Shown: positions 5,330-39,424, counted from the first letter of the stretch. The stretch is DNA of 64,000 nt from Rebecca billardiae RCC1528 (GCA_965240325.2 OZ251232.1:2232001-2296000); one strand, 5' to 3'. Made by a program: numbers and translations. The notes: generated by a model from the sequence alone, not told the origin.

Positions 5330-7409
5330 GCGCCAGCCGCCGCCAGCAAGCCAGCTGAGCAGAGCGGCAAGCGCGCACGCGGCCGCGCAGGGCACACGGG
5401 GACGACTACATCACCGCCGGATCACCCGCCAGGGCCCAGCGGCTGAGACGGCCGTCTGACATCCGGACCTGCACCCTCGCCCTCGCTCGGGGCACAGCAG
5501 GTTAGGGGGGCCAAACCGCCCATTTAAAAATGAAAAGCAAAGTCGCGTCGCATTTTCGCTCCGCCCTCGGCCTTTTAGGGTGGCGCGGAGCCTTTTTCTC
5601 GGACCTCGCTCGAAAATCGAGCTCCGACGCCTTCGGGCGCTCAGAGCTCGGTTCCGCTCCAGCACGAGCGGCCGGAGGCAGTGGACCGCCGCGCGCTCGC
5701 GACCTCTGAGACGCCGAGATGGTCTCGGGTGCGCGCGCGCGTGCCGCTGGTGGGCGCTACTGACCCGTGCCTTTGCGCCACCAGCGGCTCACCACCCGCT
5801 TCTTGGCCACCTCGCGCCGTGCGCGGCGCGCGTCGGCCGGCTTGAATTGGTGCGCTGCGTACGCCCGCTACGCTACCGCACGGTGTGGCGCATGATCAAC
5901 TCGGACCAATGAGATCGATGCTCGGACCAATCGTCCATGTATGTCTGTGAATGCCCAGCTCGCCTAACCTGCCCTACTGCGCCGGAATCGCCGTCAGCAG
6001 ACCGGCGCGAGCTCGCGCACAGCACCTCCGCGGAGCTCGCAACTGTCATGTTCCGCTTGTAGGGCCCGTGTTTGCACCTGCCGTGGCACTTGCGATGGTC
6101 AGTACGTTGGGTATGGGTCACGTGTGCCCTCTGATGGCGTCTGGGCGCCTCCCATTCGCCTCTCAGGACGTCGCGGACGTGCTCGCAGGCAGCGGTTGGC
6201 TCATTCGACAGGTCCGACGTGCACTCGACCGTGCCTGCAAGCGCGCCCCTGTGACGCTCATGCCTGCAGAAGCAGATGCAGATGGGCCCTCATGCACCCT
6301 GGTGCGCCCAAGACCGGCGGGAGCGTCAGAGACCGTCTCAATCTTGACACCTTGCACACGCCGGCGCTTGCCGTTGGGCTCCGCGCAGCCAGCCAGGAGC
6401 GCCGAACAGCGCCGGATCAGCCTCTGTAGGCCGAATATCCGCCCCTAAGCCCAGAAATAGCGCGGAACAGGGTAGTGCGTACCTATGTGGACCAATCCCA
6501 TCCAGCCTGGTTTGGTGCAGACACGCCAGCCACCGCCTGGAGCAGACGTTTGCTGCCGAATCGCATGCTCGGCACTGTGCCGCACTGCGACGACGACAGA
6601 TTTGACCTGCCTCGTAGGTCTCGGCCAGGGAGCGGTGACGGTTGGCTCGAGTGACTTTAAACCTTGACTATGACCGAGAGCACTCCCGGGCTGAGGACGT
6701 GGGGCCGGTGCTTTGGGTCTAATATGTCTGCAATACGCCGTACGCGTGGCCGTATACACAGTCTGAAAACGTATCTCGCAGCTCGAGATCAGATGAGGCT
6801 GTATTCATCAGCATGGCGCCTATATACACAGTGGGTATGTAACGATCGGTGGCTTCTAGGAAACTACATATTTGACAGCCTGCCAGTACACAGCCTATAT
6901 CGCATGTTGGGACCTGCTGCTGCTGGGGACTCAGAACGATCTCGCTGAGATGCTCTAACAAAGTGAGGTCGACATGGTCTATATGTCACATATAGGACGA
7001 CCGTTACATGCCGTTTCCAATAAGTTCAGGCTCATTCTAATAAGTAAATATGCTAGCCGTTACGCCCTATATTCAGGGTATGTGCACCTGATTTTTTTAC
7101 ATGGCCGGCCCAGACCCCTCCAGAGGGCAAATGATCCAGCCCGAAATCAGCTCTAAACACTCGCTAGGACCCGCGCTCGTGGCCGTCAGTAATGCTACAG
7201 TGCCACTTTGGCCCCCCTAAGCAGGTCCATGCGAGCCGCGCAGCGCAGGTGGATCGCGCTCCAGCAGCTCAAGGCCGCGCTCAAGCCATTCGATCGCGGT
7301 TCAGGCTATGCTCTGCCACCAGCGCCGACTTCGTGTCGACGATCGGGCACTGCCGACGACGAATCAGGAGACCTGCGCCGTCCTACCTGTGTCGTTAAAT
7401 CATGGAATG
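5330..7409. repeat. Dispersed repeat family A, copy 1 (about 5330-5502 plus 7220-7409), inverted relative to copies 2 and 3 and split by the TIR element
   Basis: 7221-7409 is the diverged reverse complement of about 8124-8315. About 5330-5500 matches about 9020-9200 in reverse. Confidence 0.8.
5503..7219. mobile_element. Non-autonomous TIR DNA transposon (about 1.7 kb) nested in a dispersed repeat
   Basis: Ends are TAGGGGGGCCAAA and TTTGGCCCCCCTA. Flanking duplication AGCAGGT at 5496-5502 and 7220-7226. Removing the element restores GGCACAGCAGGTCCATGC, the reverse complement of the uninterrupted site near 8305-8320 and 9013-9030. Confidence 0.85.
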
Positions 7410-8123
7410 CGTCGGGGCTAAGTAGTGCTGCTTTGGTTTACCCGTACGGTAACTAAGTATTAATAGCGCCGACTGCTTAATTAATAATACCTCGGTCGGC
7501 TCCCGGGCAAAGTATGATAGTCCGGCAACTACTTAGCTACCTAGCTTTCCGAGAACAGCTGACTAGCTGAGTAGTCGCGCTACTTCACTACGTAGTACTA
7601 CTACGTAGTCGACTTAAAAGGTAGCTGAGCCGTGAGCGAGCACGGGCCACTGCCCACTGTATGGCGGGCGTCAATCTCGCCTGCCTGAGCTGTGTGCGTC
7701 TCTTATTCTTAGTAAACTGTACTCGCCTGGGTAGACGCGCGGGCGCGAATCGCGAGTCGCGACGAGACTCACGTCATTCCGAGATCATCAGTTCATCAGA
7801 GCCCCGACTCCCGCCGCCGAGGCACGGACCTTGTCCTTACTCCTTTGGCACCTTTGCGCGCGCGCCGACTGCAGCCTCGACGCCGCGCCGCCGCTGCACC
7901 GAGTGCACGGCCGTCGCGCCGGCCCGGCCCGAGCTAGGCACGGCGACTACGAATAGGTGTACGTCGTAGTGGCTACGTAGTCCAACTACTTAGCTACCTC
8001 GGTCGGCACCCCGGGCAAAGTAGTCACGGCACTACGTAGCGCTACCTAGTCTCCCGTGGAACCGAGTGAACAGTAGTGATGGCTACTTACGCAACTACTT
8101 GGTGAGAAGTTGTCTACCTTACT

Positions 8124-9766: not shown

Positions 9767-10007
9767 ACGGAACGCAGGCCCCACTTGTACAAGGGAATTC
9801 CGTGGATTCCTTGCATCGCCCCGAACCGATCCTACCCGCAAATGATACGCGCTATCATAGGACTGTATTCATATTCTTACCCCTTTTGAGTGCTCCAGTC
9901 GTTCGACGAGAGCATCTCGAAGGCTCACTCGCCACCGGTCGAAGGGGTGGGGCCGCGTGGAGGCCGGCCCGCGCGTGCCGCTGACTGCGGGGTGCGCCCA
10001 GTCGGAG

Positions 10008-10694
10008 ATGCCGAAGCCGAAGGAGGGCCGCGTGCTCTCAAGCGCGTCCAAGGCGGTGAGCGCGCAGATCCACAGCATCGGCGCGCGCCTGAAGGGCACC
10101 TACTCTTCCGCGCGCCGGCCCGGCGCCGTGCCGGCCGGCGCGGCCGCGGGCGCCGCCGACGGCGCGTTCCACTTTGAGAAGGGGGCGAAGCGCGGGGCGC
10201 GCCAGGGCGCGCGATACCACGAGCAAGGCTCTGCGGAGGAGATGGTGCGCGACCTGCCGCAGCGCCTCGCGCTCCTCGAGTCCTCCCAGATGGTGTGGGC
10301 GATCGTCCGCTTCTGGCAGGCGTGCGGGCTCGGCGAGGGCGACACGATGTCGCAGCAGCAGTACGTCGCGGTGATGGAGCGGATCGCGCGCGCGCTCGGC
10401 GTGACGGCAAACGCCACAGACGAGAGCGCCGCCGCGCACGCGCTCGCGCTCGACGACTGGGCGAGCGACATGCGCGCGGCCGGCCAGGCGACGGACGGCA
10501 GTGCCGCGATGCCGATGCACGTCTTCTGCGCGTCGCTGTTCGAGCTGGCGGACGTGTGGGTCGAGACGGCGGAGGAGGCGGACTACGTGGCGTTCCTCTC
10601 GACGCTGTACTACCGCATCACCCGGCTCAGCGCGGCGGGCATGCTCGCCGTGCGCGCGGGGCTGGATGCGCACGAGGCCGCCAACTCCGACGAG

Positions 10695-10728
<34 letters not shown>

Positions 10729-13718
10729 GCGGCGGCGACGGCGGCGACGGCGGCGGCGGCGCGAGCGACCGGGCGAGCGCCGATCGCGCGCGGATGGCCG
10801 CGCACCTCCGCGCCGTGGTCAGCACGGCGAACGACCTCGCGCGCGCGCCGCGCGAGCTGTGCACGCTCTCAGCGGTGCAAGCGATGGCGGCGGAGATTGG
10901 CGCGGACGGCGCGGCGGGTGCAGAGGCGGACGGGGCCGCGGGCGCGTCCGACGCGAGCGCCGCCGCCGTGCGCAACGACGTGCGCCAGCTCGTGCGCTGC
11001 GTGAGCACCGACTCGTGCTCGAGCGCGGCCGCGCGCGCCGCGAGCCGCACGCTCGTCCGCAGCGTAAGCTCTCTGCTCGAGCGCTTTGCTGCTGACGGGT
11101 CCGGGGGGTCCGGGGGGTCCGGGGCGCTGTTCACGGAGCAGGTGGTCGCGGCCGCGTCGATGGGCGCGGAGGCGCTGATGCGCTTCCTCGGGCGCGAGGC
11201 GCTCGAGGGCGCGCTCGACCTCTCCGCCACCCTCTCAGCCGAGCCGCGCCCCAGCGGCCACGGCCCGGGCGCAATCTCGCGTGATCTCGCCGGCCCGGCG
11301 GACGGCGTGGGACGGCGCACGCACACGCCGGACGAGATCTACGCGGCGCTCACCGACGCGATGGCCGCCGCCGCCAGCACCGGCACCCAGCTGCGGCCCG
11401 AGGAGGCGGAGCGTGGGCGCGCGCTGCGCACGCGCCTTCGGCTCCGCGCCGCCAAGCAGCGGCGCGCGAGCGTGCGGCGCAGTGGCGGCGGCGGCAGCGG
11501 CGGCGTGGCCAGCGGTGGCGTGGCCGCCACGCCGGCCGGCAGTGTGCGCGCGGCGATGAAGAGCGCGCTCGAGGCGACGGCATCCGCGCGCTCGACCCGC
11601 GCGCCACGCCCGGCCAGTGCGCCGCGCTCGCCGGCGGCCACAGCGCCGCCCGCGGGCGCCGAACCTGGCACGCTCGGCGGCGCGCGCGCCCCGGGCGCAA
11701 GCGCCACCGCCGCGAGCGGTACGCCGCCCGCCGAGAAGGCCGCGCCACGTGCTTCCGGGCGGTGGCCGCTGCCCGAGCCCGCGGCGCAGCAGCCCTCGCC
11801 CCCTTTGCAGCACCCGCCCCCGAGCGGCGAGTTGGCGCAGCCGCCCGCTCCGCAACCGGCGCGCAGCCCGGCGCGCGCGCACATCGAGCGAGCGCGCGCC
11901 TTCGCCGCCGGCTCCGGGGCGGAGGTGGAGGCGGAGGCGACGGCGGCGCAGCACGGAGCGGTGGGCAGGGCGACGGCGGACGCCGGCGCGTGGGCGGATG
12001 CGCAGCCCAGCGCGGGCGCTCCGGACAGCGTCGACGCGCGATTCGCGGGCGCCGGGGGCGGTGGTGCTGACCGCCAAGGGCCGTGCGCGGGGCACGCACC
12101 AGGCTCGGCGAGCGGCTCGCACGCGCCGGCGGCGCGCGGCACCGAGGCGGGCGCCGACGGCGCGGGCAGCGAGGGCGACGACGGCCCGAGCGCGCCCCTC
12201 GCCGACCTTGCCCTCCTCAGCGTGCCGCGGCTCCCGCGGCGCTCGACAGACCGACGCAACCCTCTCATGCTGTCGAACATTTTCGAAGATTCCGAAAAGA
12301 GCGTCTTCAGCCGCGCGCCGCAGCGCACCAGCACCGCCGTGGCCGACGAGGCGGACGCGGAGGAGCCACCGGGGGCGCAGCACGGGGCGCCGGCCGCGTG
12401 CGCGGCGGAGCACGCGGGGGCACACGGCGCGGCGGCAGTTGCGCGCTCAGCACCGCCCGAGCGCGCGCGCTCAGCGCCGCGGGCGCGCGAGGGCGGCGCC
12501 GGCGCCGCTGCGCCACCCACTTCCGCCTCGGCCGGCCCCTGGGTGCGGCCATCGTCTGCAGCGTCCGCGTGCGGCGGCTCCGGCCGCCCGCCGAGCTCGC
12601 CGAGCAAGTGCGCGTCCTCGGCGGGCAGCTCGCCGCAGCCGCCGCACGCGAGCGCGGCGCACGGCGCGGCGCGCCCGGAGCCGCGCGCCGCGTCGGCGCG
12701 CGCCGCGCGTCACTCATGGCACCCTCACACAGCCGACGACTCCGACAGCGAGCAGCCCGCGGCCGATGCGCCGAGGCCGCTGCACCGGCAAGGGAGCGTG
12801 GGCGCACGCCGCGTTTCGCCCTCGCCGATGGGCGGCGCTGGCTCGCTCCCCGCCCTCGCACGTCCGCAGAGCGCGCGCGCCGCGACGCCGGCCCCTGCGC
12901 CAGGCGTCGGCGGCGCGCCGCCGCCTTTGGCCGGCGGCCGCGCTATCTCTGTGTGGCAGTTCGGAGGCGGCGGCGGCGGGGCGCCTGCGCCAGTCCCGGG
13001 CTCCATCCCCGCCATGCGCGCGCGCCACCTCCCGACCCGGCACGGCACCACGAGCGCCGCGAGCGCCGCCCCCTCGGTGCCCCCGCCGCCCATCGCGCCG
13101 CCGAGCGCTGGCTTCAGGGGAGGAAGTCGCCCAACCTCCCCCGCGCGCGGCGCCGGTGGCGGTGGCGGCTTTGGCGGCGGCGGGGCCAGCAGCAGCAGCT
13201 TCTCCGGCCGCACCGCCGCGCACCGGTACACGGGCGACGGCGCCGCGCCGGGCTCGACAGCCGGCGCCGAGTCCATCGGCACGCGCTCACGGCGCACGAG
13301 CGAGAAGGCCGGCGACGGCCGCGCCGAGCGCGCCGCCGGCCGCGGCAGTCCGGAGGCGAGTTGGAAGGCGGTGCACGAGCAGCTGGGCGCAGAGCTGATC
13401 GGGATCTTTGGCAGCACGTCGTCGGCCGAGCCGGCGGCGGTGGACGGCGGCGGCGCGTCGGGGGGGCCGCCGTCGCCGGCCAAGATGCCGCCGCCGCCCT
13501 CCGGTGGCGCGAGGATGCAGGCACTCCCGCCGAGGCGGCCACATCGCTCGTCCGCGCCCGGCTTCACGCCTTTGGGCGCGGGCGCGGGCCGGACGCGACC
13601 CGTGAGCGCCGGGCCCGCCGCCCGCCGCGTGCATGCAGCAGCTGCTCACCAGCTGCAAGCCGCCGCCGGCCAGCAAGCGATGCCGCCGCCGCTGCCGCCG
13701 CCCGCTGCGCACGCATGA
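10008..13718 (+). CDS. Hypothetical protein with N-terminal EF-hand-like helical domain and a long disordered Ala/Pro/Ser/Gly-rich tail
   Basis: Long open frame (1253 aa in the track) with first ATG at 10008. The block FWQACG...MSQQQY...DDWASD...FCASLFELADVW...EADYVAFLSTLY resembles an EF-hand-like domain seen in algal/oomycete hypotheticals. Confidence 0.65.
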
Positions 13719-14850
13719 CAGCAGTGCAGTCGTGCTACGCGAACGGCGGGCCCGCCGAACGCAATCGCGCGGTCCGAACTCGGAGATTGGAGCCGCCTGC
13801 GCTTGCTGCTTGCTGGATATCAGAAAGGCTTGCACGCGGCAGCACGCTTGCGCCGTCGTATAGTTTTTATTGTGCCATACAATATGACGACGAGGCCCGC
13901 GGAAGTTCGAAAATAATAATAATAATATAATACACAGCGCAAGATTTCGGAAAAGATGTCGTTACGGGCCCCCCCCTGCACCCGCCCGCTCGCGGAAATT
14001 CAGCATGGCGACGCGCGGCGCGCTGAAGGGCGGGGAGCGTGCGCGCGCAGTCCCAGACTACCCCGACGAATTTCCCCGAGCGTCTCCCCATCGATCCAAG
14101 ACACCCCGCCCTGCCCACAGCTCGAGATCGGAACAGGTGCAGTTGAGGTCGCGTGCCGCGCGGGCGGCTCGGGCGCCAGTGCGCACCTTTTTTTATGGAT
14201 GGCCACAGAACACCCTTCTTCCTCGGTGAGGAGGCCATGCACGGCAGCCACAGGTGCGTATGCGTTCGACTGAAGCCTGATCCGCAGCCGGCTGCTGCTC
14301 CGAGCACGCACGCCGCTCGAGTTTGGAGCTGCGCGGCAAGCACTGGCTCCGAGGCGATGATGCCAGGCGTGTGGGGTCAGATCACTGCGATGGCGCGCGA
14401 GGAGGGCGGCGACTAGGCGTCGCCGCCCGGCGATAACGGCGGAAGTTGTTGCGGCCCCGCCTCTCGCGGCCCCGCCTGCAGCACTCCGCTTACGGCGTTC
14501 GTGTCCGCCGCCCAGATCGAGCCCTCATAGCGGATGCGGCTCGACGCCTCACACGGCGGGTGCAACCTGCAGCGCCGCCCCGCATGACCCAGCTGCCCGC
14601 GCGGCAGCTGCCGAGACCACGTGCCCGCGGCTCAACCCCTCGGTGTTGACCGCCGTCGTGTCACTACCGCCGCCTGGCCGTGCCGACTGCCCGCTGCCCT
14701 CACCCTTCCACCTCCCTGCTGCCCGTGCAAGCCGGAGCTCGCCACCAGCTGCCCGCACTCGTCGACGAGACGCCGATCGCTGGCCCGGCCCATTGCTCAT
14801 CGCCCGCCGCCCGCACGTCCGCGCCGCGGCGCCCGCCGCACGGCACGCAG

Positions 14851-15780
14851 CTCTCGGCGGCAAGCATTGCTGCCGTGGACGGCAGCGCCGACCTGCTCGC
14901 GATCCACGTTGCCGAACTGTCGGAGGCGAACGTGCGCAAGAGCTGCGAGCTGAGCGCCGTGCCGAGACTCGAGAAGCAGCTGCACGCGGAGCGCGCTGCA
15001 GCAGCCGAACGGACGGCGGCAGCCGCCGAGACGATGGCTGCACTTAGGGTGCTGCTCGGCGTGGCCGAGGCCAAGTGGCGCGCAGCCTCGGCCGATGCCG
15101 CCGCGAGCAAGCCTGCTCGGCAAACCGCTGCGTTCGCGCTTGCCGCTGCTGCTCGGCGTGAGGCGCGCGCGCACGTGGCCGAGCGCGCTGCCGCGCGCGA
15201 GGAAGGCGCGGAGGAGCTTGGGAGGCTCGAAGCGGACCTGGCTACTGCGCACGAGGTGACACGTGCGGCGTGCGGGCGCGCGTCCCATGCGCGTGCAAGC
15301 TCGAGCTCGCGCGCGAAGAACTTGGCGCCAAGCCTCCGCGCACGAGAGCGCGGCGGAGGCGGTGGCGGCGGTGCGGCGCACGAGCAGCGAGCAGCCGCGC
15401 CATCCAGTCGGACGAGCAGTGATGAAGTGCTTCAAAGCTCGGAGTCGGATTCACCGTTCACGTCGGTCACGGCCTGCCACGCAGCTGTCGGACTGAGTCC
15501 CGGTCCCGGTCATCGTCCGGCGCTGAGTCGTGACTCGGTCTCGTGGCAGCAGCCGCGCCCGGCGGCGCGCGCGGCCGGCGGGCTCGCGCGGCTCACGGGT
15601 AGTCTCAGTCGCCTGACCAAGTTAGAGTCGTGTTATCGACGAGTAGGACCGTACGTCGTGAGAGTCATCGCGGAGGCTGCTGAGTCAGCTGCGCCCGACC
15701 CGCTCCGCGCCTCCGGTCAGCCTCCGCGCCCGCGGCCGCCTCCGCCGCGGGGCCGGCCGATCGGGCGGTCAGCCGCGTAG
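14851..15780 (+). CDS. Probable terminal exon of a hypothetical coiled-coil protein; 5' exons unresolved
   Basis: Acceptor-like CACGCAG ending 14850, followed by Ala/Glu/Arg-rich helical sequence (LAIHVAELSEANVRKSCEL...LEKQLHAERAAAA). Confidence 0.35.
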   Translation, partial: LSAASIAAVDGSADLLAIHVAELSEANVRKSCELSAVPRLEKQLHAERAAAAERTAAAAETMAALRVLLGVAEAKWRAASADAAASKPARQTAAFALAAAARREARAHVAERAAAREEGAEELGRLEADLATAHEVTRAACGRASHARASSSSRAKNLAPSLRARERGGGGGGGAAHEQRAAAPSSRTSSDEVLQSSESDSPFTSVTACHAAVGLSPGPGHRPALSRDSVSWQQPRPAARAAGGLARLTGSLSRLTKLESCYRRVGPYVVRVIAEAAESAAPDPLRASGQPPRPRPPPPRGRPIGRSAA

Positions 15781-15890
15781 TCCACGACGAAACTCTCGTT
15801 CGTGACGTCCGACCGGTCGATCTGCGAGTAACCGGTACGTATAGTGTGAGCCGCCGTGCTGACTGCGTGACGCCGCGGCCGGGCCCGGGC

Positions 15891-15982
15891 GCGCGGGTGC
15901 CAGTAGCTATACTAGAGATACTAGCTAGGCCCCGGGTGCCAGTAGCTACTGGCACCCGGGCGGTAGCTACTGGCACCCGCGC
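15891..15982. repeat. Nested palindrome
   Basis: Perfect 30-bp palindrome CCCGGGTGCCAGTAGCTACTGGCACCCGGG (15931-15960) inside an outer inverted pair GCGCGGGTGCCAGTAGCTA / TAGCTACTGGCACCCGCGC. Confidence 0.9.
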
Positions 15983-16019
15983 CACCGGTGACCCGCCCTG
16001 CCTCGGCCGCGGCCGCTGC

Positions 16020-16860
16020 CATTGACCCGGCGGCGAGTGAGAGTCCCCGTCAGCTCTCATGATGGCCTCACGCGAGGATCGCGCCGGTACGGACCGCTGC
16101 GACGACTGGTGGCGCGCGCCGACTTCTGTCTGTCTCGTGCAGCGAGCGAGCCGCGGCGCCGGCGGCAGCGGCGGCAGCCGTCGCGCCGCCGACTGCTGCG
16201 CTGGCTGCTGCGGCGGCGGCGTCTGCGGCGGAGCTTCAACGGCGGCGAGCCGCGCGGCCCGCGCGGTCCGGGCACAGAGCGGCTGAGCTGTGACACGGGA
16301 TGCCGGACCGTCCCGCCGAGCGGCAACGGTCGTCACGGGCTGCACGTTGGGCTCGGACACGGCCGTGGTGAGGTTGACGAGAGCAAGTACGACCTCGCCG
16401 TTGTAGTGCATGAACTTGAGCGAGATGACCGCGCTGAACGAGCAGACCAAGTCTGTTCGGCACGCCTCGCCGCGTGCGTCGAGGCCGAGGAAGGCTGGGT
16501 TCTCAGGAACGGTACTGCAGGCGACGGTGCACACCGAGCGGACGTTCTGCTCCACCACCTCCATACCGCCGAGCGCGACGAACTCGGGCGCACACAGTGC
16601 CTCGCGCAGGAACGCAGCAGTCAAGCCGCTTGCCCCCGTGCCGGTCACGTCGCCGAGTCACGCCGCAGCCGCTCATGAATCTTGCGCACCTGCGCGACGA
16701 AGAGGGCGGCGCTGCACGCGGACATGCAGATAGCGAGGTGCGCGACGTGCAACGCGTTCATCGCCGTCGCCAGAGCGCTACCAGACCCACACATCGCCTG
16801 CCATGCCGCCTCGACCGCCTCGCGCGAGCTCCACAAACAGCGCGCTTCTGCCGCGCGAGC
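16020..16860 (-). CDS. Possible spliced hypothetical gene; boundaries uncertain
   Basis: Protein-like segments ALATAMNALHVAHLAICMSACSAALFVAQ and ALCAPEFVALGGMEVVEQNV...ISLKFMHYNGEVVLALVNL are separated by a CAG|GTGCGC donor-like site near 16690. Confidence 0.35.
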
Positions 16861-17542
16861 ACGCTCTGCTGTGTGATCTGGTTGGTGTACCGGTGAAAAT
16901 GCATCGAGGGGCCCTTCGTATGCGGCATTAGACCTCGCACGTCCTTCTCCCCGCCTTTCTTTCACGCCAAGTGTCTGCGCGCGCGGCGATCCGCGGCGGC
17001 GGGCAGATGCGGCCACATGCAGGCGAGCAGCAGAAAGGGCGCGCGTGCATGGTGAACGCGTCAGATGCAGGATACGCGATGCGCATTTTGGGCATCTACA
17101 CTCCGATCCCGCCCATCGCCACTTATTCGCCAGACCCGCATCTCCAAGGGGCTCGGCGCTGTGCGTGCCTCCGCGCGCGCGAATGTTCAAATCATGGCCG
17201 CGCGTGCAAACGGGGTGCAGGTGGACGATGGATGCGGCGGAGCGATTCCTGCGCCGCGCCGCAAATGCGGGGAACTGTATTGCGCAGCTGAATCGCACGC
17301 ACCATCGCGGCCCAGCCAAGCCGCTCGGTCCCAGGCCGACGCCAGCTGGCGACGTTCGTCGCGCGATGGGCGATTTCGACGACATCGCGACGCTCTCGAC
17401 CGAAGTCGACTCCGGCCGTCCGCCGGCCGCGTCCAACTGCCGGCGAGGGGGGGCCACTCGGCGGTTATCGATTTTTTTAATGGGTTCGCCGAATTAGCTT
17501 ACGGTCGTGGCTGGCGGGCGATCCTGCGCTGTGTATAATAAT

Positions 17543-17772
<230 letters not shown>

Positions 17773-18149
17773 CGGGCCGCCGGCCGCGCCGCTGCTGCGG
17801 GGGCCGCTGGGGCCCGGGGCGGGCGCCGGCGCGCGGGCCGCCTGCCTGTCCCGGCACCGCCCCGCCGCGCGGCGGCCGTGAGCCCCACTCCCAGCCAGCG
17901 CCGCTGCCGGCCGCTCCGGCACTCGGACTCCGGTCACAGACCGGTGGCTGCCGCGCCCTTGCCTTGGTGACGTCAGACGTACGGGCGGCGACGGCTTAGT
18001 CAGTTACTGAGTTAGGGAGATCACTAGTCCCGAATTCGGCCCGGATCGTCGGCCGCGCGTCGTCGATGAGTGAGAGGATGACATTCTCATTCTGCATTTA
18101 TTACTTGAAGCTTACTGCGCAGGTTAATCGGTACATCGGCAACTCAGAG

Positions 18150-18655
18150 TAGTTTATTACTGCTAATAAGAATAAGAGACGCACCGTCAGCTCCGTAGTC
18201 CGTGCCAGGCAGGCGAGAGTCGACGCCCGCCAACTGTCACCGCGCCCATGAAGCCGTCGCCGATGGTAGCGCCGTCGAAAGATTCGTTCAGCCGTCCGCC
18301 TGCGAGGCCTGGCCGAGGGCTGTGGCCGCCTCGCGGCGCGCCAGCGCCCGTCGTCCTCGCCCCACCGTCGGGGCCACAAAACGTCGTCGTCCGAACTCTC
18401 CCGCGGGCTGGGTGCCGATGCGAACAGCGCGCCGACAGGATGTAGTATGATGGAATGTGGAGCTCCACTGTCGGTTGGGGAAGGCGTGTATCAAGCGGCA
18501 TGACTGGGGTAGCTTATCACATAGAAGGCCTGGCCCTCAGGTGATATGTGAATGTGCCCCAATGTGGCGTGTCCGCCTCAAATAAGCTGAAAGCCCGGCG
18601 GCAGGCGGTTCCGTGTTGCCCGGAGGGTTCGCTGGCACCAGCTGCGAGGGCCGGG
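18150..18655 (-). mobile_element. Dispersed repeat family C (about 500 bp) ending in motif B; abuts the XopQ-like coding sequence
   Basis: Diverged reverse complement of about 63275-63995. Shared blocks include AAGCGGCATGACTGGGG, TAGCTTATCAC and CCATGAAGCCGTCGCCGAT. Confidence 0.8.
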
Positions 18656-21600
18656 GCGGGCACGCCTGGGCGCGCGTACGACGCGCAGCCTCACGAGTTC
18701 CGCCTGAGTGGCTTTGACGACGTCGACTCTGAACGCCTCGAGAACGGCGCGGCTCTCTTCGAGCGCACGCTGCGCGAGATGCCTCCCTGCTCGCTTACGG
18801 TCGTCTGCATCAGCAGCCTGCGCGATTTCGCCGACCAAATCCGCCTCAGCTCGAGCCTCGTGCTCAGCCGCGTGTGCGAGGTTGCGATCCAGGGCGGGCT
18901 TGAGCGTGATGCGGAGGAGAGGTGGGTTCCAGACTCGTCCGTGAACAACGGTGCGCGCACTCTGCAGCTGAGCAGCTCTTTTCCGCGCTCGCGCCCAACC
19001 AATGAACCACCAACCAACCAACCAACGACCGCCACTGACTGACACGCAACGTCGCATCTGACACCGCACACCCCGCTTCTGCCATCTTGCAGGTTTCGAC
19101 ATGGAGGGCGCGGCCGAGGTCTATGCGTTCTGCCTCACGCACGACATCCCGCTCTCCGTCGTGTCTCGTCACGCCGTGCCACTCCTCCCCATGCAGGTGC
19201 TGCCACAGCGAAGCGCCAACCAACCAACCACCACGGACGCGTGAGCCTCACTGAGCTCGCGCGTCGCAAGGCTGCAGCACTACCACACTGCTGCTACTCG
19301 TGCACAACACTGACCCGACTCGCCACCTCGCCCACGCGCGCCCGCGCCCTGCTGCCTGCTGTTCATGTAACATGTTGCTGCTGCCGTCCTTCCCGGCTGA
19401 TGATGCTGGCGCCGCACCACGCACAACGACGACTTTGCCACCACTTCCTACGCCATCGTCAAATCAACGACGTGCACGTATACAGCTCGCGCGGAGCTTC
19501 GCGACGCGCACGTCCGACGACATCATGTCGTACCTTGCGGACGCGCAGTTCCTCGGGCTCGAGGGCCTCTGGCAGAAGCTGTGCGCGGGCATGCTGCCCC
19601 CGCGATGCTCCAAGCGCTGGTACTTTGAGACCTTCTGCGGCGTGGCCGACGACAGCGCGTACGAGGCGGGCGGCTTTGAGGAGCTCGGCGACGACGCAGA
19701 CATCGAGAGCTATCTCGCGGGTTCCGTCAAGCCGTACGACGTGGTCGCGCTGATGAGCGTGCTGCCGCAGACCCGAGACTTCTTCCCGCCGCCGCAGAGC
19801 GCGACGCCTCCTCCGGCCGTCGCGCAGCCTCCCAGACCAGGGCATCTCCTGGGCAAACGGGCAGGCTCGCTGGCCGGCGCTGTCCTCCGGTCCTCCGACA
19901 GCGGCGCCATCGCCAAACCGACAAAACTCGGCGCGAGCAGCGCGCTGCGATGGTCGATGAACGATGTGCGGTCGGCGGCGGAGGTCCCTCCGCCGACAAG
20001 TCCCGGCGCTGACCGCACGCTGCGAAGGTCGATGAACGATGTGTGGGCGGCGGAGGTGCCCCCGCCCACGCCGCAGCGCCAGCGGCTGTACCTCGAGCCC
20101 GAGCACTGCATCGACGTATCCCACGTGCTCAAGCTGCTCCGCGACACGTATCACGAGGTCGTGCTGCTCGCGCATGACACGGCGGCCGCGCGGGCGGAGG
20201 CAGCTGCGGCGGCCGCACTCGACTCCGGCGTCGGCCGCGAGTCAGACGATGCTCCGTCAGCCCGGGCCTCGACATCGTCACCGACGTCGATGATGCTGGG
20301 CACGCCGGAATCCCTCGCGCAGGCGGAGACCGCGCTGCTCAAGCACGTGCAGCGGCAGCGGTGCGCGCAGCAGCAGCGCGTGGTCTCCGTACTGCAGCCC
20401 GCCGACGCGCGCCGCGAGCTGCGCGCGGAGCTGGGCACGCCGCCCCGCTTGAACAGCCGGGAGCGGTCTTTCGGCAGCAGCTCTCCCCAAAAGGCGGACA
20501 GGTTCCGCGGGCGGCACAGTACGGGCACGAGCCCGACAAGGAGCTCGCCGCTCCGCAGGGAGAGGCATCGCTCTGGCGCGCACACAGCGGGCAGCACCCC
20601 GGCGATGCGCTCACGGCTGCCTGCCCTCGAGCGGCAGTCCTCGAGCCCGGCCGGGCCGCAGCGCGACCGCAGCAGCAGCGCCGCCATCCACGAGCCGCCA
20701 TCGGCAGCCTCCTCGCTCTCAGATGCGCGGTGGTCGGAGCCGAGCGGGCGGACAAGCGGGGACAGCTCGCCCGGCCGCGCGCGCGCGCACAGCCGCCGGG
20801 GCCGGCGCACGCCGACGCAGGCGATGGCGCCGCCCTCGCCACCGGCCGGCAAGCTGCGCGCGGTGCCGGGCGGCGACGGTGCCGGTGCCGGCAAGGGCTG
20901 CGCGCCAGCAGCCCGTGAGCCGGCGCTGTGGCGCATGCCGGCCGAGCTCTCGGGCAGCGCGTGCTCGACGGGCACGCGCGACCGCCTCTCCAGCGCGGCG
21001 CAGAGCCTGGCCTCCTCCTACTCCTCGGTCGGTCTGGGTGGCACGCCCGCCACCGCCGCCACCAGGCCCGCGCTCTCGGCGCGCGCGCGCGAGCGGCGCG
21101 CCGAGCTGATTGAGTTCTTTGAGAAGATTCTCGACGAGGTGTCGCACGCGCAGCGGCGCGTGTCGATCGCGCTCGCGTTCGGCGGGATGGTGCTGCTCGC
21201 GGCGTCGTTCGGCGCGTACTGCGTCCTCGCAGTGCATGCCGCGTGGCCATCGCAGCAGCAGCAGGCCGCGGCGGCGCCATCGGCGGCGCCGAGCCAGTCG
21301 GGTGCGTGCTCCGAGGCGGCACCGTGCGACGGGTGGCGGTCGGGCTCCGCCCGCAGCGTGCTGGTGGCGCAGCTCGACGCGCTGAGCGTGTGCTACATGG
21401 CCGGGACCGTGCTAGCGCTCCTCGCGCTCCAGCCCACGCGCGCCTTTGTGCCGCCCATACGCCTCGCCGGCGCCGTGATGTGCCTTATCTACGCCTTTGC
21501 TGCAGGCTTCTCGGCCGCGCGTGTGTTCGCAGCCGCGATCGCGGGTCGCACCCAGCTCGGAGGCGCGGGCGTCCGCGACACGTCGCCGGGCGGCAGCGCG

Positions 21601-23052
21601 GCACCGGCCGCGCCCGGGATTCAGTGGGAGGACCTGTGGGTGGGCGGGGCATCCGCCGCCTGCCTCGTCTACGCCGCGCGCGCGCTGCTGCGCAGCGAGT
21701 GCGGCGCGCGCCCGCTCCTGCCGCGCGAGCAGCTCCGCGCACTGACGACTGTCCTGGGTGCGAGCACCTTTGCCGAGGTCGCGAGCGTGTTGGCGCGCCG
21801 CGCGGTGCTGGGCTGGACGCACGCGGTGGACGAGCCGCTGCTGGTGGGCACGACGTGGGCGCGCACGCTCGTCAAGGCCGGCTTCGCCGCGGTGCTCCTC
21901 AGCCCGAGCGCGCGCGCGCTCGTGCGCCGGCAGGTCGGCTACTGCTTCTGGCGCTCGGCCGCGGCGCGCGCGCCGTCCGCAGCGCGCAGGCGTCCACGCG
22001 TGTCGCCCGGACACCACGCGACGGCGGCGCTCGCGCCGCTCATTGGCTTCGGCCATGACCCCGACGCAGGCGGCACCGCGTCCTCTACGGCCGCGCTGGC
22101 CGCGCCCGAGGCCAGCTTCGTCGAGCTTACCGTACTCACTTCGTACTCACATTTCCGATCGATGGAGCTGGGCGAGGCAGCGATGGGCGCACTCCATGAC
22201 GCGTGGGCGCGCGAGGCGGCCGGGCTCGCGCCGACCGGCGGCGCGGCGGCGGCGGGCAAGGGCGCGGGCTGGAGCCCGAGCACCTCGCCGCTCCTTCGCA
22301 GCCGGCGCGCGGCGGCGCTCGACGACGTCGAGGCGGCCCTCGCCAACGGGCTGGATGTTGCCACTACCCCAGCCGCCGCCTCTGCCGCCGCGCACGGAAC
22401 AGCCGGCTGCGACGGCTTCGGCGCGGATATGTTCGTGGTGCACGCGGCGGCGGACGACGCTGCGGCGAAGGTGGAGGCGCTGCGCGCGTGGGTCGACCGC
22501 GAGCGCCGCGCGGCGCCCGAGCAGCCGCCTCTGCGCGCGTGGGTCGACACGATGTGCACGCGCCAAGCCGGCGGCGGCGGCAGCGCTGGCGGTGGCATTC
22601 GTCCAGAGCAGCGGCTTGCTCACGCGCTGGTCAGCATGCACCAGTGCCGCCGGCTGCTGCTGCTCGCGGGGCCGGCGTTCCCGGACTCGCTCGAGTGCGC
22701 CACCGCCGTGCACTCGTGGCAATGCCTCGGCCGCTCGCTCGACGACGTGAGTGTCGCGCTCGTCGTGCCTTCCGCCGAGCACGGCGGCGCGACCGCCAGA
22801 GCCGGCGGCGCGGACACGGCGTCCGCCGCGACCGCCGCCGCCGCGGCGCAGCAGATCCTCGCCGCGTTCGACACGTTTGCCGTGATGTACTGCACGCTGC
22901 CGCGCTCGGCGGAGGACGCGACGCGGCTCGTGCACGCCGTCGAGCTCGGCTCGCCCGCTGCGTACAACGAGGCGACGCGCGCGTGCGTGCCGCTCGTCGC
23001 CGCCGCGGTCGCCACCGACCAGGCCGAGCGGCGGACGGTCGGAGGTCCGTAG
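18655..23052 (+). CDS. Multidomain protein: XopQ/HopQ1-like nucleoside-hydrolase fold, about 6 TM helices and a degenerate TIR domain; 5' end missing or disrupted
   Basis: Exons about 18655-18950, 19093-19196 and 19486-23052 join in frame through GT-AG introns. They give VVCISSLRDF, VAIQGG, VNNGFDMEGAAEVY, IPLSVVSR, LEGLWQKLCAGMLP, WYFETF and KPYDVVALM. The C-terminal TIR-like region reads DMFVVH...KVEALRAW...WVDTMC...CRRLLLLAGPAF. Confidence 0.75.
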
Positions 23053-23316
23053 CCGATGGAGCGCTGCGCGCCGCAAGTAGCGCCGCTCGTGACGCGAGCC
23101 ATTGCCGCCTGCGTAGACAGGCGTGCCATTGAAGCCTTGTGAACCGCGAACGATGACGACAGCCATCGCTCGCCCGGTCGAGGGACGCGACGTCGCGGCT
23201 CGTGCTGTTGACCGTTGGTGTCGTTTATTTGGCGCCGCCCGTCGATCGATGACAATGCCGACCGGTTTGACCTGATCTTTCGTTCGCAGCAGCCGGCGGC
23301 GGAGCTCCCACGCGCG

Positions 23317-25532
23317 ATGCAGCAGGCGCGCATCAACGCCTTCTTCAAGCCCAAGCCGCTGGGCTCGGACGCGGCCGATGCGGACGCGGGGTCGCCGGTC
23401 AGCCCGGCCGGCCGGCCGCAGCGCCGCTCCTCGCAGCAGCAGCAGCAGCGCCACGTGATCAAGACGGGCGTGCCGGTCGGCGCTGTGATGCTTCAGGCGG
23501 AGAAGCAGCACGCGGCGCGCGCCGAGCAGGGCGGGTACCTCGCGGCGGGCTCGAAGCTGTCCAAGGCGTACGCGGCGCTGCCCGCCACGCGCAAGGAGGA
23601 GCTCTGCTCCGCCGCCCTCGACGCGCCGTCCATCGCGAGCGCGCTCGAGTCGGTAGCCGCCGAGCGTGCGGCCGCTGACGACTCCAAGCTCAGCTCCCCC
23701 GAGCCGGACGTGCGCGACGAGTCGACGCCGTCCTCGTCGGGGGAGGAGGACGACGTGGACTACTCGTCCCCATCCGCGCCGAACGAGCCGGCCGCCGACG
23801 CCGAGAAGCCCGCCTCGCCCGTGCCCGCGCCGCGCGCCAGTGGCGGCGGCGGCGCTCGCAGCAGCGGCGGCGCTCGCAGCGGCGGCGGCGGCGGCGGCGC
23901 TGGCCTGAGTGAGTACGAGAAGCAGCGGCTTGCGAACATCGCGAGCAACCAGGCGATGCTCGCGCGGCTCGGTCTGCTCGGCGACTCGAAGCCCAAGCTC
24001 TCGGCGGCTGCCAGCGCGCCGCCCAAGCCGCCGCGGCTGCCCAAGGTGCCGCGCAAACGCGAACGGCCAGCCGAGCCATCCAAGCGATCGTCGAGGCTGC
24101 GGGGCGCGGAGGTCGAGCTGATTAGCCTGGACACGGTGTGCAGCAGCGCGGGCGCCGCCGCCGCCCCCAACACCCACCCCCCGGGCTGGGTAGGTGCGTG
24201 TCCGGAGGGGCGGCGGGGCGCGCGCGAGGACAGGAGCGCTCTGACCTCGCGCCGCGCCGCGCCGGTCCGCGACTCCGCGCGCGCGCACGCCGCCCACGCC
24301 GCGCGCGCAGGTGAAGCTGGTCCGGCCGGAGCGGCCGTCGGTGCCGCGCGCGCCGCGTGCCACCGACCTGAGCCCGGAGCAGATCGCCGAGATCGCCGCG
24401 CAGGCGGGCAACGAGTGGTTCGACGGATTCCAGGAGTGGATGTTTGAGCTGCACTCGGCTGCGAATGCGCGCAACGTGATTGGCCAGATCTCGCGGCTGG
24501 TCTCGGGGCTGGGCGTGGAGCACAAGACGGCGGACGCCGTGTTCATGGCGGGCGAGTGCCTGGGGCTGGGCGCGGACGTGCTGGCGCTCAAGCAGCGCGC
24601 GAAGGAGTGGCTCGCGGAGGTTGGGCCGGTGAGCGAGCTGCGGGGCCCGCCGCGCGCCGTGCGCTGCGCCGCGCAGCGCCTGTGCCCCGCCCTGCCCCGC
24701 GGCCCAAGCCCACGCCGTCCGCCCGTGGCCCTCCCACGCGAGCACACGCGAGCACACGCGCACACACGCACACACGCACACACGCACTCACGCGTGCACG
24801 AGCGCACGCGCGCACGCCCCGCGCGCACGCGCGCGCGCGCCGCGCGCGCAGGACACGTCCGGCGGCTGGCTGATCTCGCACCCGCTCTCAAAGCTGTACG
24901 GTTACCAGCAGCACCTGGCGGAGGAGCGGCTGCTGCGCGAGGAGGAGGCGGCGGAGGCGGAGGGTGGCGGCGCGGCGGCGCACGCGCACGTGGCGGCCGG
25001 CGCGGCCTCGGGCTCGGCCCCTGGCGGGGCGGCGGCGGAGGTTGACGGCGCGGCGGCACACGCGCACGCGCACGCGGAGCTCGGCGCGGCCGAGGCGGCC
25101 GAGGCGGCGCCGGCTGACGCCGCAGCGCAGCGGCCGGACGAGCGGCTGGCGCCGGCACCGGCCTCGGCTGAGCCGCCGGCGGTGGCGGCGGAGATGGACG
25201 GCGCTCCGCCCACGACGGGCGGCGCCACGCCGGCGGCTGACCACCCTGTGGCAGCGGAGCAACCGGCGGCGCTGCTGCCGCGCGCTGCGGGCACCGCCTC
25301 CGCTCCCCTGGCACCAGCGGCAGAGGCGGGCAGCGCGAGCCCGTCAGCGCCTGCTGCAGCGGAGGAGGGCAGTGCGCGCGCCGCAGCGCGCGAGGCGGAT
25401 TCGCCCTTGCAGCACGCCGCGGCATCCGCGCACCCACCGGGCGCCGGTGCCGCCGCGCCGTCGGCTGGAACGGAGGGTGACGCCGCAACGACTGAGCCCG
25501 CCCCGGCGACCACTGGGGATGGCGGCTGCTGA
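23317..25532 (+). CDS. Putative nuclear protein with N-terminal PIP-box, an SEYExxRxxNIxxN helix and a conserved-looking C-terminal domain
   Basis: Exons 23317-24135, 24311-24628 and 24852-25532 (GT-AG, in frame). Motifs QARINAFF, LSEYEKQRLANIASNQAMLARLGL and DTSGGWLISHPLSKLYGYQ. Confidence 0.7.
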
Positions 25533-26085
25533 GCCCGAGCACTTTCGCCGTGACCAGCCAACGCAGTCGCAGTCGTATCCCCAGCAATGCCCAACGCAGT
25601 TCCGAGCGCTCTCCGGCGGCTCGTGCTACCGGCCTACAGTGGCTAACTACTCGCGCGCGTATGACGGCACTTTCAACTTGCCACTTGGCCCCGGGCCCGG
25701 CCCGGGCCGAGGCTACGCGGAGGCGGAGTATGGGGCGGAGCCCCGCTGGCCGCTCGCCGCTGTCGGTCACTCTGGCAGCAGGCTCCGCAGCCGAGCAGCA
25801 GGGCGATCAAGCAGGCTGCTGCATTCATCACACTGTCATGCATGTAATACGTATATGTACATGGTAACAGTGGACTACTGCTGTACGGTCTAATTTATTA
25901 ATTAGACACTCGAACTCAGACTCAGTAGTTTCCGCTGACCGGAGTCCGGACGCTGTCCGTCTCAGGAGCCTCGCATCCGACGGGGCTCCTCACTGGCGCT
26001 TTCGCCCCCAGTGGTATTTTGTAATAAGCCCACCGCCTTCTAATGGCCCTGTAACGGCCGGCGGGTCGCTCTGCGACACCGCCAA

Positions 26086-35591: not shown

Positions 35592-38309
35592 TCAGCACCA
35601 CGCCATCCACCAGATGTACATGTCCTTCAGGTTGTCGATCGACGTCGCCTCGTGGATCAGCTGCTGCACCTGGCTCGGCACGGTCGCGGCCGTGCGCGCG
35701 CCGGGCATCACGCCATCCAGCCTGTCGCGGATGCGCGTCATCGTCTGCACGGCGCCGCCGAGCCCGGCGCGGCGGCCCGCGGAGGCGTTCCACTCGACGA
35801 GCGGGTCGTGCACGAACGTGTCGAGCACGCTGAGCAGCGTCTCCGAGTGCGCGCGCGCCGTCGCGAGCGTTACCTCCGCCACCCGCCGGTACACACCCTC
35901 GGCGCCCGCGACGCCAAAGCCGTCGAGCATGTTTTGCGTGAGGCGGAACGGGACGCGCTCGGGCGTGGCGAGCGTGAGCCCCTTGTCGAAGAGGCACGAG
36001 AAGTCCACGTGCACCAGCGAGCCCGTGCGCTGGCAGACGAGCAGGTTCTCGCCGTGCCGGTCGCCCAGCCCGACGACGTAACCGACGATCGACGAAACGG
36101 CCGCGGAGCGCGCGAACCGCAGCCGCGCGCCGAGCCAGTCGGACGGGTCGGGGAAGGTCTCGGCGAACCAGCGGTGGAGCACGGCGGGGTGCTGCTCGAT
36201 CATCCGGCGCAGCCACGCCGCCTTGTCCCCCTTCGCGCCCTCATGCGCCTGCTTGATCTCTGTGTTGCTCGGCAGCGCGAAGTGCCGCCACTCGTTCGCC
36301 ACGAGCGATCGCAGCGGCGCGAGGCCGTGCACCCACTCGATCAGCCCGCACTCCTCGGAGAGCGGGAGCACGGCGTAGGTCTTGAGCCGGAGCTCGCGAC
36401 GGCGCGACTCGGCGGTGCGCTCGAAGAGCACGTTCACGCCCGCCATGAACTCCATCATCCGCGCGTCCTTGCGCAGGTCGTCCTTGGGCTTACATAGGAA
36501 GACGTGGGTAACGCCGTCCGACCCTTTGATGCCGATCTTCTTGGGTCGCTGCAGCGAGACCATCGTCTCGATCTCGCGCGCCCAGCCGACGATGGTGGGC
36601 GCGTCGGCGTCGGGCGGCGCGAACTCGTCGGCGTCCGCCTCCTCCGCCTCCGCCTCGCCGAGCGCGCCGAGCGCGCCGCCGCCGCCGCGCCGCGCCGCGC
36701 GCTCCGCGGGCGCGCGCTGCCCGTGCCACGCGCTCAGGCTTGCCTGCAGCGGCACCAGCATGGCCGCCGGGCGCAGCTTCCACAGCGCGGGGAACTCGCG
36801 GTCCATCGCGAAGCGCTTCGCCTTGTCCGACGGCAGCGCGTGGTTTGTCAGCTCGATCAGCCGCGCCACGAGCGCGTGCGCCTGCTCGACGAGGCCTCGC
36901 TGCCCGCGGTACCCAGCCGTCGCCTTGAACTGCGCGAGCAAGTTGCCCGCCTGCGCGCGCCGCGTGGCAGAGACCGAATGCGCCTGCGGCACCACCGACC
37001 AGAGCGCCTGGCGCGGGTGCGCGGCGAGCACGCGCACGATGGCGTCGTGCACGAGCGCGCGCGCCGGCAAGTGCTCGTGGCACGTCCGCGAGACGAGCTG
37101 CGAGAGGACAACGAGCCAGTAGTGCGAAGGCAGCGCGTCGAGCAGCTCGGCCAGCGCGCCGTCCGCGTCGCGCTCGAGGCCCTTCAGCGCGCCGCGCAGC
37201 GCCTTGGCGCGGACGTCGGCAAACTGCACCCAGAGAGCAAGCAGCCTCGGCAGCGCCTGTAGCAAGTGCCGCGCGGAGCGGCGGAGCGCGGCGCCGTACG
37301 CGCGCAGCGCGCCGAGCAGGTGCCCCCCGCGCAGGTACGCCTTCTCCGCGTCGAGCTGCGCGCCGTCCGCCGCCGCCGAGAGCAGCGCGCGCAGCCGCCC
37401 GTCGTGGTAGCGCGCGAGGCCCATCCACGCTCGCTCCGAGTCGGGCGCGTCGGCGACCGCCGCCTCGAGCTGCGCTTGCACCGCCTCGGGCGAGAGGTCG
37501 CCCGCCGCCTCGCCGTACCTGCAGTAGAGCAGCTGCAGCCGCGCGCGCGCGTCCGACGCGCGCGCGTCGTGCGCGCGCGCGCCCGCACCCTCGAGCGCCG
37601 CCGCGCCCGCGGGCACGCCGCCGCCGCCGAGATTGCAATCTCGGCCGCCGCCGCCGCCGCCGAGCGCGTTGATGGCTTGCCGCGCCGCGACCACGGCCTC
37701 GTGCGCGCCGCGCCCGTCGGCGAGCAGCTTGGCGGCGAGCGCGGCGGCGGCGGGGCACGCGGGCCGCAGCGTGCGCGCGAGGGCGAGGCAGTTCGCCGCC
37801 ATCCCTGGGCAGCCCTGCGCGCGCGCGAGCTTCGCGAACTGGAGCCACTCCGCCGCCATGGCGCCCTCGACCAGGGCGAGCGGCGCGGCCGCGGCCGAGA
37901 TTGCAATCTCGGCGGCGGCGGCGTGCGCGCGGGCGAGCAGGGTTCGCAGCAGGCCGAGGAGCGCGCAGCGCGCGGAGACGATGGGCTCGCGGCACACGAG
38001 CGACGGCGCGGTCCCCGCCAGCCGCACGCGCCACGCGCCGAGCAGCTCGCGCGCGCCCTCGCCCGCGTCCGCGCCGCCGCCTTCCAGCCGCGCGCGCGTG
38101 CGGCCGAGCACGCGCGCGCCGTGCTCGAGTTCAGCGAGCACGTGCGCGCGGACAAGCAGCGGCGCGGCGGCGGCGCTCGACTCCATGCCCGCCGCGGCGA
38201 GGGACGGGAGCAGCAGCTGCCGCGCGTCCGCGAGCGCGCGCGCGAGCGCGCCAGACGCCGCGCCCGCCGCCGCGCCGCCGCCGCCGTCCGCGCCGCCATC
38301 CGCGCCGCT

Positions 38310-38356
<47 letters not shown>

Positions 38357-39393
38357 TCCCGAGGATCCGCGCCGCCGCGGCGGCATCGGGCGCGTCGACG
38401 GCGGCGCGCAGCAGCAGCAGCACACGCGCGACCGCGCGCTCGAACGCGCTCTCGCGCATCTCCTCGTCGCCGAGCCCCGGCACGCCGAGCACGGCGGCGC
38501 TCCCGCCCGCGCCGCTCCCGCGCGCGCCGCCGCGGCGCTCCGCGGTCGCGTCGAGATGAGCTGCCAATGCCGGCCATTCGCCGAGGCGCCACGCGGCCTG
38601 GAGGGCGTAGCCGGAGAGCAGGCGAGCGTCTGCGGCGCTCGCGCACGCGCCCGCGGCCTCGGACGCGTGCGCGAGCATCGAGCGCAGCAGCAGCTGGCGG
38701 CGCATGCACCGCAGCGCGCCAACATGCAGCCGCGTGCGCGTGCGCGCGCCGCCGTCCGCGCCGCTGCCGTCCGCGCCGCCGGCGCCCGCGCCGCCGCCGG
38801 CCGCGCCGCCGCCGCCGGTCTCGGCGCCCGGCGCGCCCCAGCCCGAGCCGTGCGCGTGCAGCAGCTGCTCGTACCGCCCGAGCGCGCTCGCCCAGTCCGC
38901 CGCGGCCTCGTGCGCGCGCGCCTCCGCCTCCGCGTCCGCCGTGCGCTGCAGCCGCGCCACGCCGAGCAAAGAGTCAGCCTCGCCAATCTGCGTGTGTGCG
39001 CCGTGCAGCGCTCGCAGCGTCGCCTCGGCGCGCGCGCCGCCGCCGCCTCCGGCCGCGAGGTTGGCCGTCTCGTAGCGGAGCTGGAGCTCGGCGTACTTGA
39101 TCGCGCGCGCCGGCGCGCCGCAGCCCAGCGCGCCCGCCAGCAGCAGCTCGAGCGACACGCGGTCCAGCAGCTGAGCGCAGATCGCTCGGCCGAGTGGGGA
39201 CAGTGCGCCCGCGCCGCTCGCCGCGCCGAGCGCGCGGCTAAGCGCGCCCGCGGCCGATGGGCGGTTGGCCTTGGCGTGCGGGTCGCGCTTGATGTGGAGC
39301 ATGTCGGCGCGCTGCTTCCACGCCGCGAGCCGCTCGAGCAGCGTGAAGACCAGCTGGCCGCACTGCACGAGCTCGGACGAGGCCGCAGGCCCT

Positions 39394-39424
<31 letters not shown>

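Follow-up and report, generated by a model that had tools for sequence, protein, structure and literature searches.

We analyzed a stretch of 64,000 nucleotides from the genome of Rebecca billardiae RCC1528 (GCA_965240325.2 OZ251232.1:2232001-2296000; the whole stretch is called the window below, and positions are counted from its first letter), which carries a plus-strand gene with three recognizable exons, the last ending at 23052. From the N- to the C-terminus, the deduced protein contains part of a hydrolase domain resembling the bacterial effectors XopQ and HopQ1, a long linker, six hydrophobic segments, and an alpha/beta domain with a predicted TIR-like fold. We regard the locus as a member of a multigene family of pavlovophytes (haptophytes), whose membrane proteins of about 900-1500 residues consist of an XopQ/HopQ1-like hydrolase domain, a disordered linker, six putative transmembrane (TM) segments, and a TIR-like domain, in this order. 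In the window the N-terminal third of the hydrolase domain is missing, and the homology of the gene to its relatives begins where a dispersed repeat ends.

The GC content of the window is very high (from 0.53 to 0.82 per 2 kb), and chance open reading frames (ORFs) of great length are frequent. An ORF by itself is therefore little proof of a gene, and we relied on the GC content of the codon positions and on homology. In the frame of the long ORF, the GC content at the third codon position (GC3) is 0.82-0.95, unbroken from about 19500 to 23050 on the plus strand, and that at the second position (GC2) is mostly the lowest; the frame of each exon is backed by plus-strand GC3 periodicity. An antisense ORF of 1207 amino acids (22147-25770, minus strand) overlaps the 3' end of the gene and the next gene. 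Since the GC3 phase marks the plus strand as coding, this ORF is an artefact of GC-richness. Elsewhere in the window, blocks of extreme GC content (0.77-0.82) at 10001-14000 and 38001-46000 contain ORFs of more than 1200 amino acids in several frames.

With the last exon (exon C) as the query, 198 relatives were found among 1.84 billion cluster representatives at an E value below 1e-3; many of them are 900-1300 residues long and match in three to five stretches. Both soluble domains are present in 41 of the 158 proteins retrieved, and 26 of these 41 have a complete hydrolase N-terminus. Named sources of the relatives are Diacronema lutheri, with several paralogues, and Pavlovales sp. CCMP2436. 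The whole fusion lies on single transcript-like contigs, for example as one ORF of 1283 amino acids with short flanks on a contig of 4041 nucleotides (L001), and it is also carried by an MMETSP ORF marked 'type:complete' (P0010). Furthermore, a D. lutheri paralogue shares the long last exon. The continuous frame with its GC3 signal, together with these contigs, shows that the fusion of hydrolase, TM block, and TIR-like domain is real as a family and is a single protein, as the sequence-only reading had proposed. We found no published description of a fusion between an XopQ-type and a TIR-like domain in literature searches, in line with that reading, which knew of no described protein of this kind. 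The product of the window's own gene was not retrieved from the protein collections, where the results were swamped by low-complexity words, and a metagenome scan gave two distant loci only.

Several observations on the relatives are recorded here in their own right. Proteins P0114 (1652 amino acids) and P0131 (750 amino acids) from JGI contigs have the XopQ-like hydrolase domain fused to WD40 beta-propellers, which is a second, receptor-like architecture of this domain in environmental eukaryotic sequences. P0036 was considered as a naturally truncated relative and rejected, since its transcript-like contig (JGI 3300016802; L005:1-500) holds the N-terminal part in another frame: hydrolase profile positions 4-60 and 48-331 lie in different frames. 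This split may stem from a frameshift, from misassembly, or from an intron that was retained, and the ORF as called looks falsely truncated. At a D. lutheri paralogue locus (L002:6001-7077 of JAGTXO010000010.1; KAG8465511.1), the deposited model seems to splice out part of a hydrolase-coding exon: profile and tblastx matches are continuous over about 6270-6725, and the deposited exons are 6270-6425 and 6630-6713. This may explain the missing Pfam match of the product. Synteny with this locus was sought and set aside, as tblastx gave only GC-rich noise.

The spliced model was searched exon by exon, each exon as its own query, and a family hydrolase profile was built from 41 relatives for hmmsearch. 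The matches of the profile to the exons are far above chance, with E values of 2e-35 for exon A, 1e-15 for exon B, and 1e-43 for exon C (positions 207-312). In tblastn searches of the window with the relatives, the homologues are collinear and gap-free over all three exons, starting with exons A and B and continuing through the start of exon C, a short stretch at 20050-20181, the TM block, and the C-terminal domain. The three exons and the peptides quoted from them in the sequence-only reading are all found in the frames given there, with canonical GT-AG introns, matching phases, and the junction as written. The 5' bound of exon A is the start of homology, at which no splice site is proven. 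In exon C, the hydrolase domain is completed and is followed by the linker, the TM block, and the C-terminal domain (Table 1).

Table 1. Features of the hydrolase/TIR-like gene and of the dispersed repeat in the window (HSP, high-scoring segment pair)
Feature	Position	Strand	Basis
Dispersed repeat copy	18206-18655	+	blastn, 72-74% identity to 63280-63810 (-); in alignment A4 similarity ends just past 18655
Exon A, hydrolase domain	18642-18950	+	profile positions 70-174; tblastn HSPs start at 18629-18653; donor GT at 18951
Intron 1	18951-19092	+	142 nt, GT..AG, phase 1; one residue between homologue HSPs across the junction
Exon B, hydrolase domain	19093-19196	+	profile positions 174-212, 34 codons; tblastn 54-71% identity
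Intron 2	19197-19485	+	289 nt, GT..AG, phase 0; homologue HSPs collinear
Exon C, single long coding exon	19486-23052	+	TAG stop at 23050-23052; within ORF 19300-23052; HSPs along whole length
C-terminal part of XopQ-like hydrolase domain	19486-20181	+	profile positions 207-333, E 1e-43; conserved segment 20050-20181
Tandem duplication, about 75 nt, 80% identity	19918-20069	+	blastn self-match of 19918-19997 with 19993-20069
Ser/Pro/Arg/Ala-rich low-complexity linker	20182-21159	+	translation; GC3 0.85-0.90; no homologue HSPs
Six hydrophobic, putative TM segments	21160-21924	+	Kyte-Doolittle peaks; family-averaged profile
C-terminal alpha/beta domain, predicted TIR-like fold, then helical extension	22426-23040	+	alignments A1 and A2; AlphaFold2 models; Foldseek
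Second dispersed repeat copy	63280-63810	-	blastn; surrounding ORFs inspected

When exon A and the first part of exon C were searched against PDB sequences, only XopQ chains were matched, collinearly at residues 134-207 and 244-336, with E values of 0.64 and 2e-4; the latter value was obtained for the start of exon C with XopQ 4kl0/4p5f, and 7jlu_B was also matched. Exon B and the segment 20032-20199 gave chance matches only. The relation is much clearer in the complete relative P0001, whose residues 16-306 match XopQ (4kl0, 4p5f, 7jlu_B) at an E value of 1e-25. The non-canonical Asp motif is part of the aligned stretch of about 290 residues, and the canonical hydrolase 6ba0 is matched at only 6e-4. 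Since P0001 is so much closer to XopQ than to 6ba0, the family is placed among the HopQ1-like proteins (HLPs), a separate clan of the inosine-uridine (IU) nucleoside hydrolase superfamily (PF01156). Judged by sequence similarity, the hydrolase part is XopQ/HopQ1-like, as first suggested from motifs, and not an ordinary IU nucleoside hydrolase. Pfam gave no match with the window's separate exon pieces at E values up to 1, and recognized IU_nuc_hydro (PF01156) at the N-terminus of seven of eight long relatives. The relatives P0001, P0010, P0034, P0072, P0093, P0039, and P0047 scored 38.9-49.5 bits against this model, above its gathering cut-off of 34.2. An in-frame duplication of about 75 nucleotides (Table 1) sits in an inserted loop of the hydrolase domain, an insertion that P0001 does not have.

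The hydrolase domain in the window is incomplete. Profile positions 1-69 have no profile or tblastn match on either strand of the whole 64 kb, and all 19 conserved positions that precede profile position 70 are without a counterpart in the window. These missing columns include the Asp-rich motif near the N-terminus, which is 94-100% conserved in the relatives; the N-terminal Asp cluster of IU nucleoside hydrolases binds Ca2+ and ribose. The C-terminal Ca2+-binding Asp is kept, aligned to D399 of the XopQ chain in a column that is 92% conserved in the family, and it is one of the 52 retained positions mentioned below; the region of XopQ D120 is absent. Because the neighboring minus-strand gene extends to 16648, only about 16650-18640 is left for any 5' exon. 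This interval shows little coding signal and contains two adjoining microsatellites at 17543-17770, an (ATG)n-type array (period 6, 14 copies) and (AT)73. The frame of exon A closes shortly upstream with no ATG between, and no intron that would support an upstream coding exon was predicted by the tools or shared with the relatives. Three other places were considered for the missing N-terminus and rejected: 15885-15974 on the plus strand (1.8 bits, wrong GC3 phase, within a tandem repeat), about 6400-6640 on the minus strand (E values of 0.04-0.9, in an ORF unlike a hydrolase), and an Asp-rich motif near 17372 on the plus strand, which had no profile score.

The repeat that adjoins the homology start is about 450-530 bp long with a near-identical core of about 60 bp; besides the two copies in Table 1, a fragment occurs at 7662-7714. 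It may be a mobile element or a shared regulatory module. It has no match in Rfam, Pfam, or a tRNA search, and no homology to the hydrolase family was detected around the copy at 63280-63810 by hmmsearch with the family profile or by tblastn with homologues over the whole window. The repeat copies cease to resemble each other no more than about 15 bp from the point at which hydrolase homology sets in (18641-18653), and in the D. lutheri paralogue described above profile positions 22-173 lie in one exon. Most simply read, the repeat has taken the place of the 5' portion of the corresponding exon in the window.

Thus, the window's copy, without the Asp cluster and without the Glu of the TIR-like domain discussed below, would most likely be a recent truncated paralogue with no catalytic role, and it is probably not an active enzyme. 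We give a probability of roughly 0.55 to the whole reading, namely that the gene is a member of the hydrolase-TM-TIR-like family, with the mechanism proposed below for its complete members, and that this copy is a recently 5'-truncated paralogue, either non-catalytic or decaying. A possible but rather unlikely explanation is that the gene is intact and functional, its 5' end being a short or strongly diverged exon, or else the repeat having provided a new N-terminus, and that the protein acts as the complete members do or is a regulatory variant of them. Several findings weigh for such a gene and against truncation. The parts that are present are well kept: 52 of the 54 hydrolase positions beyond 70 that are at least 85% conserved and covered by the window are identical, as are 14 of the 15 such positions of the C-terminal domain. 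Both introns retain their GT-AG sites, and the reading frame stays open over 1188 codons with strong GC3. Such preservation would be seen in a working gene and likewise after a truncation that happened recently. A profile search could also miss 5' exons that are very short or diverged, and about half of the complete members do not have the Glu either, so that its loss is no defect by itself. However, positions 1-69 remain unmatched in the same 64 kb in which the 34 codons of exon B were found at 1e-15, the upstream closure of the exon-A frame and the lack of a supporting intron oppose a further coding exon, and a hydrolase domain that is missing its initial beta-alpha-beta units would be unlikely to fold.

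Between the two soluble domains, the linker of 330 codons is coding according to GC3, but its sequence is not conserved. The hydropathy of the window's protein shows six segments, in keeping with the roughly six helices counted in the sequence-only reading, and the average of 48 relatives has its peaks in the same places (corresponding to 21172-21225, 21385-21423, 21463-21516, 21634-21678, 21748-21804, and 21856-21891), besides a marginal seventh peak. The TM block is homologous throughout the family (25-28% identity, tblastn E values down to 4e-16), and no relative of it was found in Pfam or, in a profile search of the block together with the C-terminal domain (A3), in the PDB. The N-terminus of P0001 has no hydrophobic segment by hydropathy. 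With this and the even number of TM segments, both soluble domains should lie on the cytosolic side of the membrane.

Across 73 relatives the C-terminal domain is conserved, most of all in an Asp (99%), a Trp (98%), and an Asn (97%). AlphaFold2 models were obtained for the domain of the window (pLDDT 75) and independently for that of the relative P0061 (pLDDT 88). With both models, the PDB matches found by Foldseek were almost all TIR domains (RUN1, RPV1, RPS4, RPP1, SARM1, ThsB, and SPARTA), which made up 48 of the top 50 matches for the first model and the top 20 for the second, rather than other flavodoxin-like folds; the TM-score for RPS4 was 0.47-0.49. The best viral match is a TIR/WD40 protein of Tetraselmis virus 1. 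The predicted order of secondary structure fits beta-A to alpha-D of TIR domains, and a helical extension of some 75 residues follows. In 40 of 66 members (61%), and in 13 of the 24 complete members that could be scored, the third helix begins with a Glu, where the window has Ala. We take this column to be that of the TIR catalytic Glu at the start of alpha-C, a placement made by the order of predicted helices and a TIR motif rather than by residue-level structural alignment.

The modelled structures therefore argue, weakly, for a TIR-like fold, and we do not count the domain as an established member of the TIR family. The TIR domain claimed from the sequence alone is borne out to the extent that the nearest solved folds are TIR, and the sequence profiles and low TM-scores stop short of it. 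An improbable alternative is that the C-terminal domain is a lineage-specific alpha/beta domain, possibly HET-like or an adaptor, that the hydrolase serves ordinary metabolism or binding of nucleosides at a membrane, and that the link between XopQ and TIR is a coincidence. Here too, part of the evidence weighs against our reading. No TIR call was made by Pfam (pieces of the window and relatives), by PADLOC (20 members), or by PDB searches with sequences and with the profile of alignment A1, the single Pfam match being to TIR_2 at an E value of 0.14 in one relative. The Foldseek matches are marginal, with best E values of 6e-4 (RUN1, 7rts) and 0.037, only one match below 1e-3, and TM-scores of 0.3-0.49. 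The most conserved residues (Trp, Asp, and Asn) are not at the presumed position of the catalytic Glu, and conservation of the Glu at only 61% argues against a uniformly catalytic TIR domain. Against this alternative stand the consistent TIR matches, the viral one included, the fitting strand-helix order, and the Glu with which the third helix begins in 61% of the members; moreover, the hydrolase with which the domain is joined is of the XopQ type, whose sole reported substrate is 2' cyclic ADP-ribose (2'cADPR). As for HET, its conserved blocks resemble those of the C-terminal domain, which we treat as a lead only, since Pfam gave no match to HET (PF06985) at E values up to 1 with the pieces of the window and 18 family members. 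HET has been reported as a remote relative of TIR and a cell-death or adaptor domain in fungi, stramenopiles, and Haptophyceae (PMC4986451). Finally, it is very improbable that a hydrolase gene and a separate gene for the TM block and C-terminal domain only look fused through a GC-rich artefact: chance ORFs such as the antisense one do occur here and the linker has no homologue match, but GC3 stays at 0.80-0.90 in a single frame through the linker, relatives have both domains in uninterrupted ORFs on transcript-sized contigs and in the complete MMETSP ORF, and the D. lutheri paralogue has an equally long last exon.

Among known systems, the closest for the N-terminal domain is XopQ itself. XopQ was reported to be a specific 2'cADPR hydrolase with ADP-ribose as the product, which does not cleave 2',3'-cyclic nucleoside monophosphates; hydrolysis requires D120 of the N-terminal cluster and D399, and mutation of D120 abolishes it (preprint 10.64898/2026.06.15.732069). 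Degradation of 2',3'-cyclic nucleotides by XopQ, to which the sequence-only reading had referred, is contradicted by the same work, in which 2'cADPR hydrolysis is known only for bacterial XopQ homologues (10.64898/2026.06.15.732069). XopQ is a soluble, secreted bacterial effector, whereas in the present family the domain forms the N-terminal part of a eukaryotic protein with six TM segments and a TIR-like C-terminus. Algal HLPs, including those of haptophytes, have been reported with no mention of further domains (PMC6019455).

On the side of TIR signalling, the nearest solved folds are those of plant TIR-NLR proteins, SARM1, ThsB of Thoeris, and SPARTA, from which the present family differs in its lack of sequence-profile membership, its helical extension, the location of its conserved residues, and, in the window, the Ala. 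In Gephyrocapsa huxleyi, genes for proteins with several TM segments and a TIR domain respond to virus infection (PMC12489294). What these proteins have in common with the present family is that several TM helices, here N-terminal, precede a TIR domain, which is intracellular in them. Unlike those of the present family, however, their TIR domains are recognizable by Pfam and have the conserved Glu, and no hydrolase domain has been reported in them.

In the complete members, the TIR-like domain may make or relay an NAD-derived ribose-nucleotide signal at the membrane, and the XopQ-type domain may bind or cleave that signal, which would be of the 2'cADPR type, and so give the protein its own terminator or sensor; the TM block would be an anchor or an effector. 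The predicted location of both domains on the same side of the membrane is suggestive of a self-contained module, in which a nucleotide signal of the TIR type would be produced or passed on and afterwards terminated or sensed. The proposal of the sequence-only reading, that a potential eraser or sensor and a TIR domain sit in one membrane protein, is in this sense kept for the architecture of the family. For the copy in the window a working eraser or sensor is doubtful, as the hydrolase N-terminus with the Asp cluster is missing. The fusion as first observed thus stands, and its interpretation is supported in part.

The neighboring genes gave no match in Pfam. Upstream, a divergent gene on the minus strand, recognized by GC3 phase, has exons at 14797-15435 and 15665-16648. 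Downstream, a plus-strand gene at 23215-25045 shows very strong GC3 in two consecutive frames (ORFs 23215-24447 and 24311-25045); it starts about 270 bp past the stop codon, with a likely ATG near 23319.

XopQ is reported to disarm both plant and bacterial TIR immunity through cleavage of 2'cADPR (10.64898/2026.06.15.732069). That a hydrolase of this type is naturally fused to a TIR-like domain in eukaryotes ties the hydrolase clan to the metabolism of TIR signals by a separate line of evidence, namely domain association. It is a tentative possibility that pavlovophytes natively combine in one membrane protein a 2'cADPR hydrolase of the XopQ type, a TIR-like domain that makes a signal, and six TM segments that act as an effector or anchor. 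If this is true, haptophytes would have cyclic ADP-ribose signalling of the TIR type in which a terminator or sensor is built in, a cellular regulator of TIR signals would have the bacterial effectors XopQ and HopQ1 as its secreted relatives, and the copy in the window would be a truncated, non-catalytic offshoot of the family. Because its hydrolase domain is truncated, this copy is a poor representative. The family as a whole is a concrete set of genes for studies of expression, structure, and distribution, and the fusion would point to TIR-type signalling in haptophytes, a group in which virus-responsive TM-TIR genes are already known.

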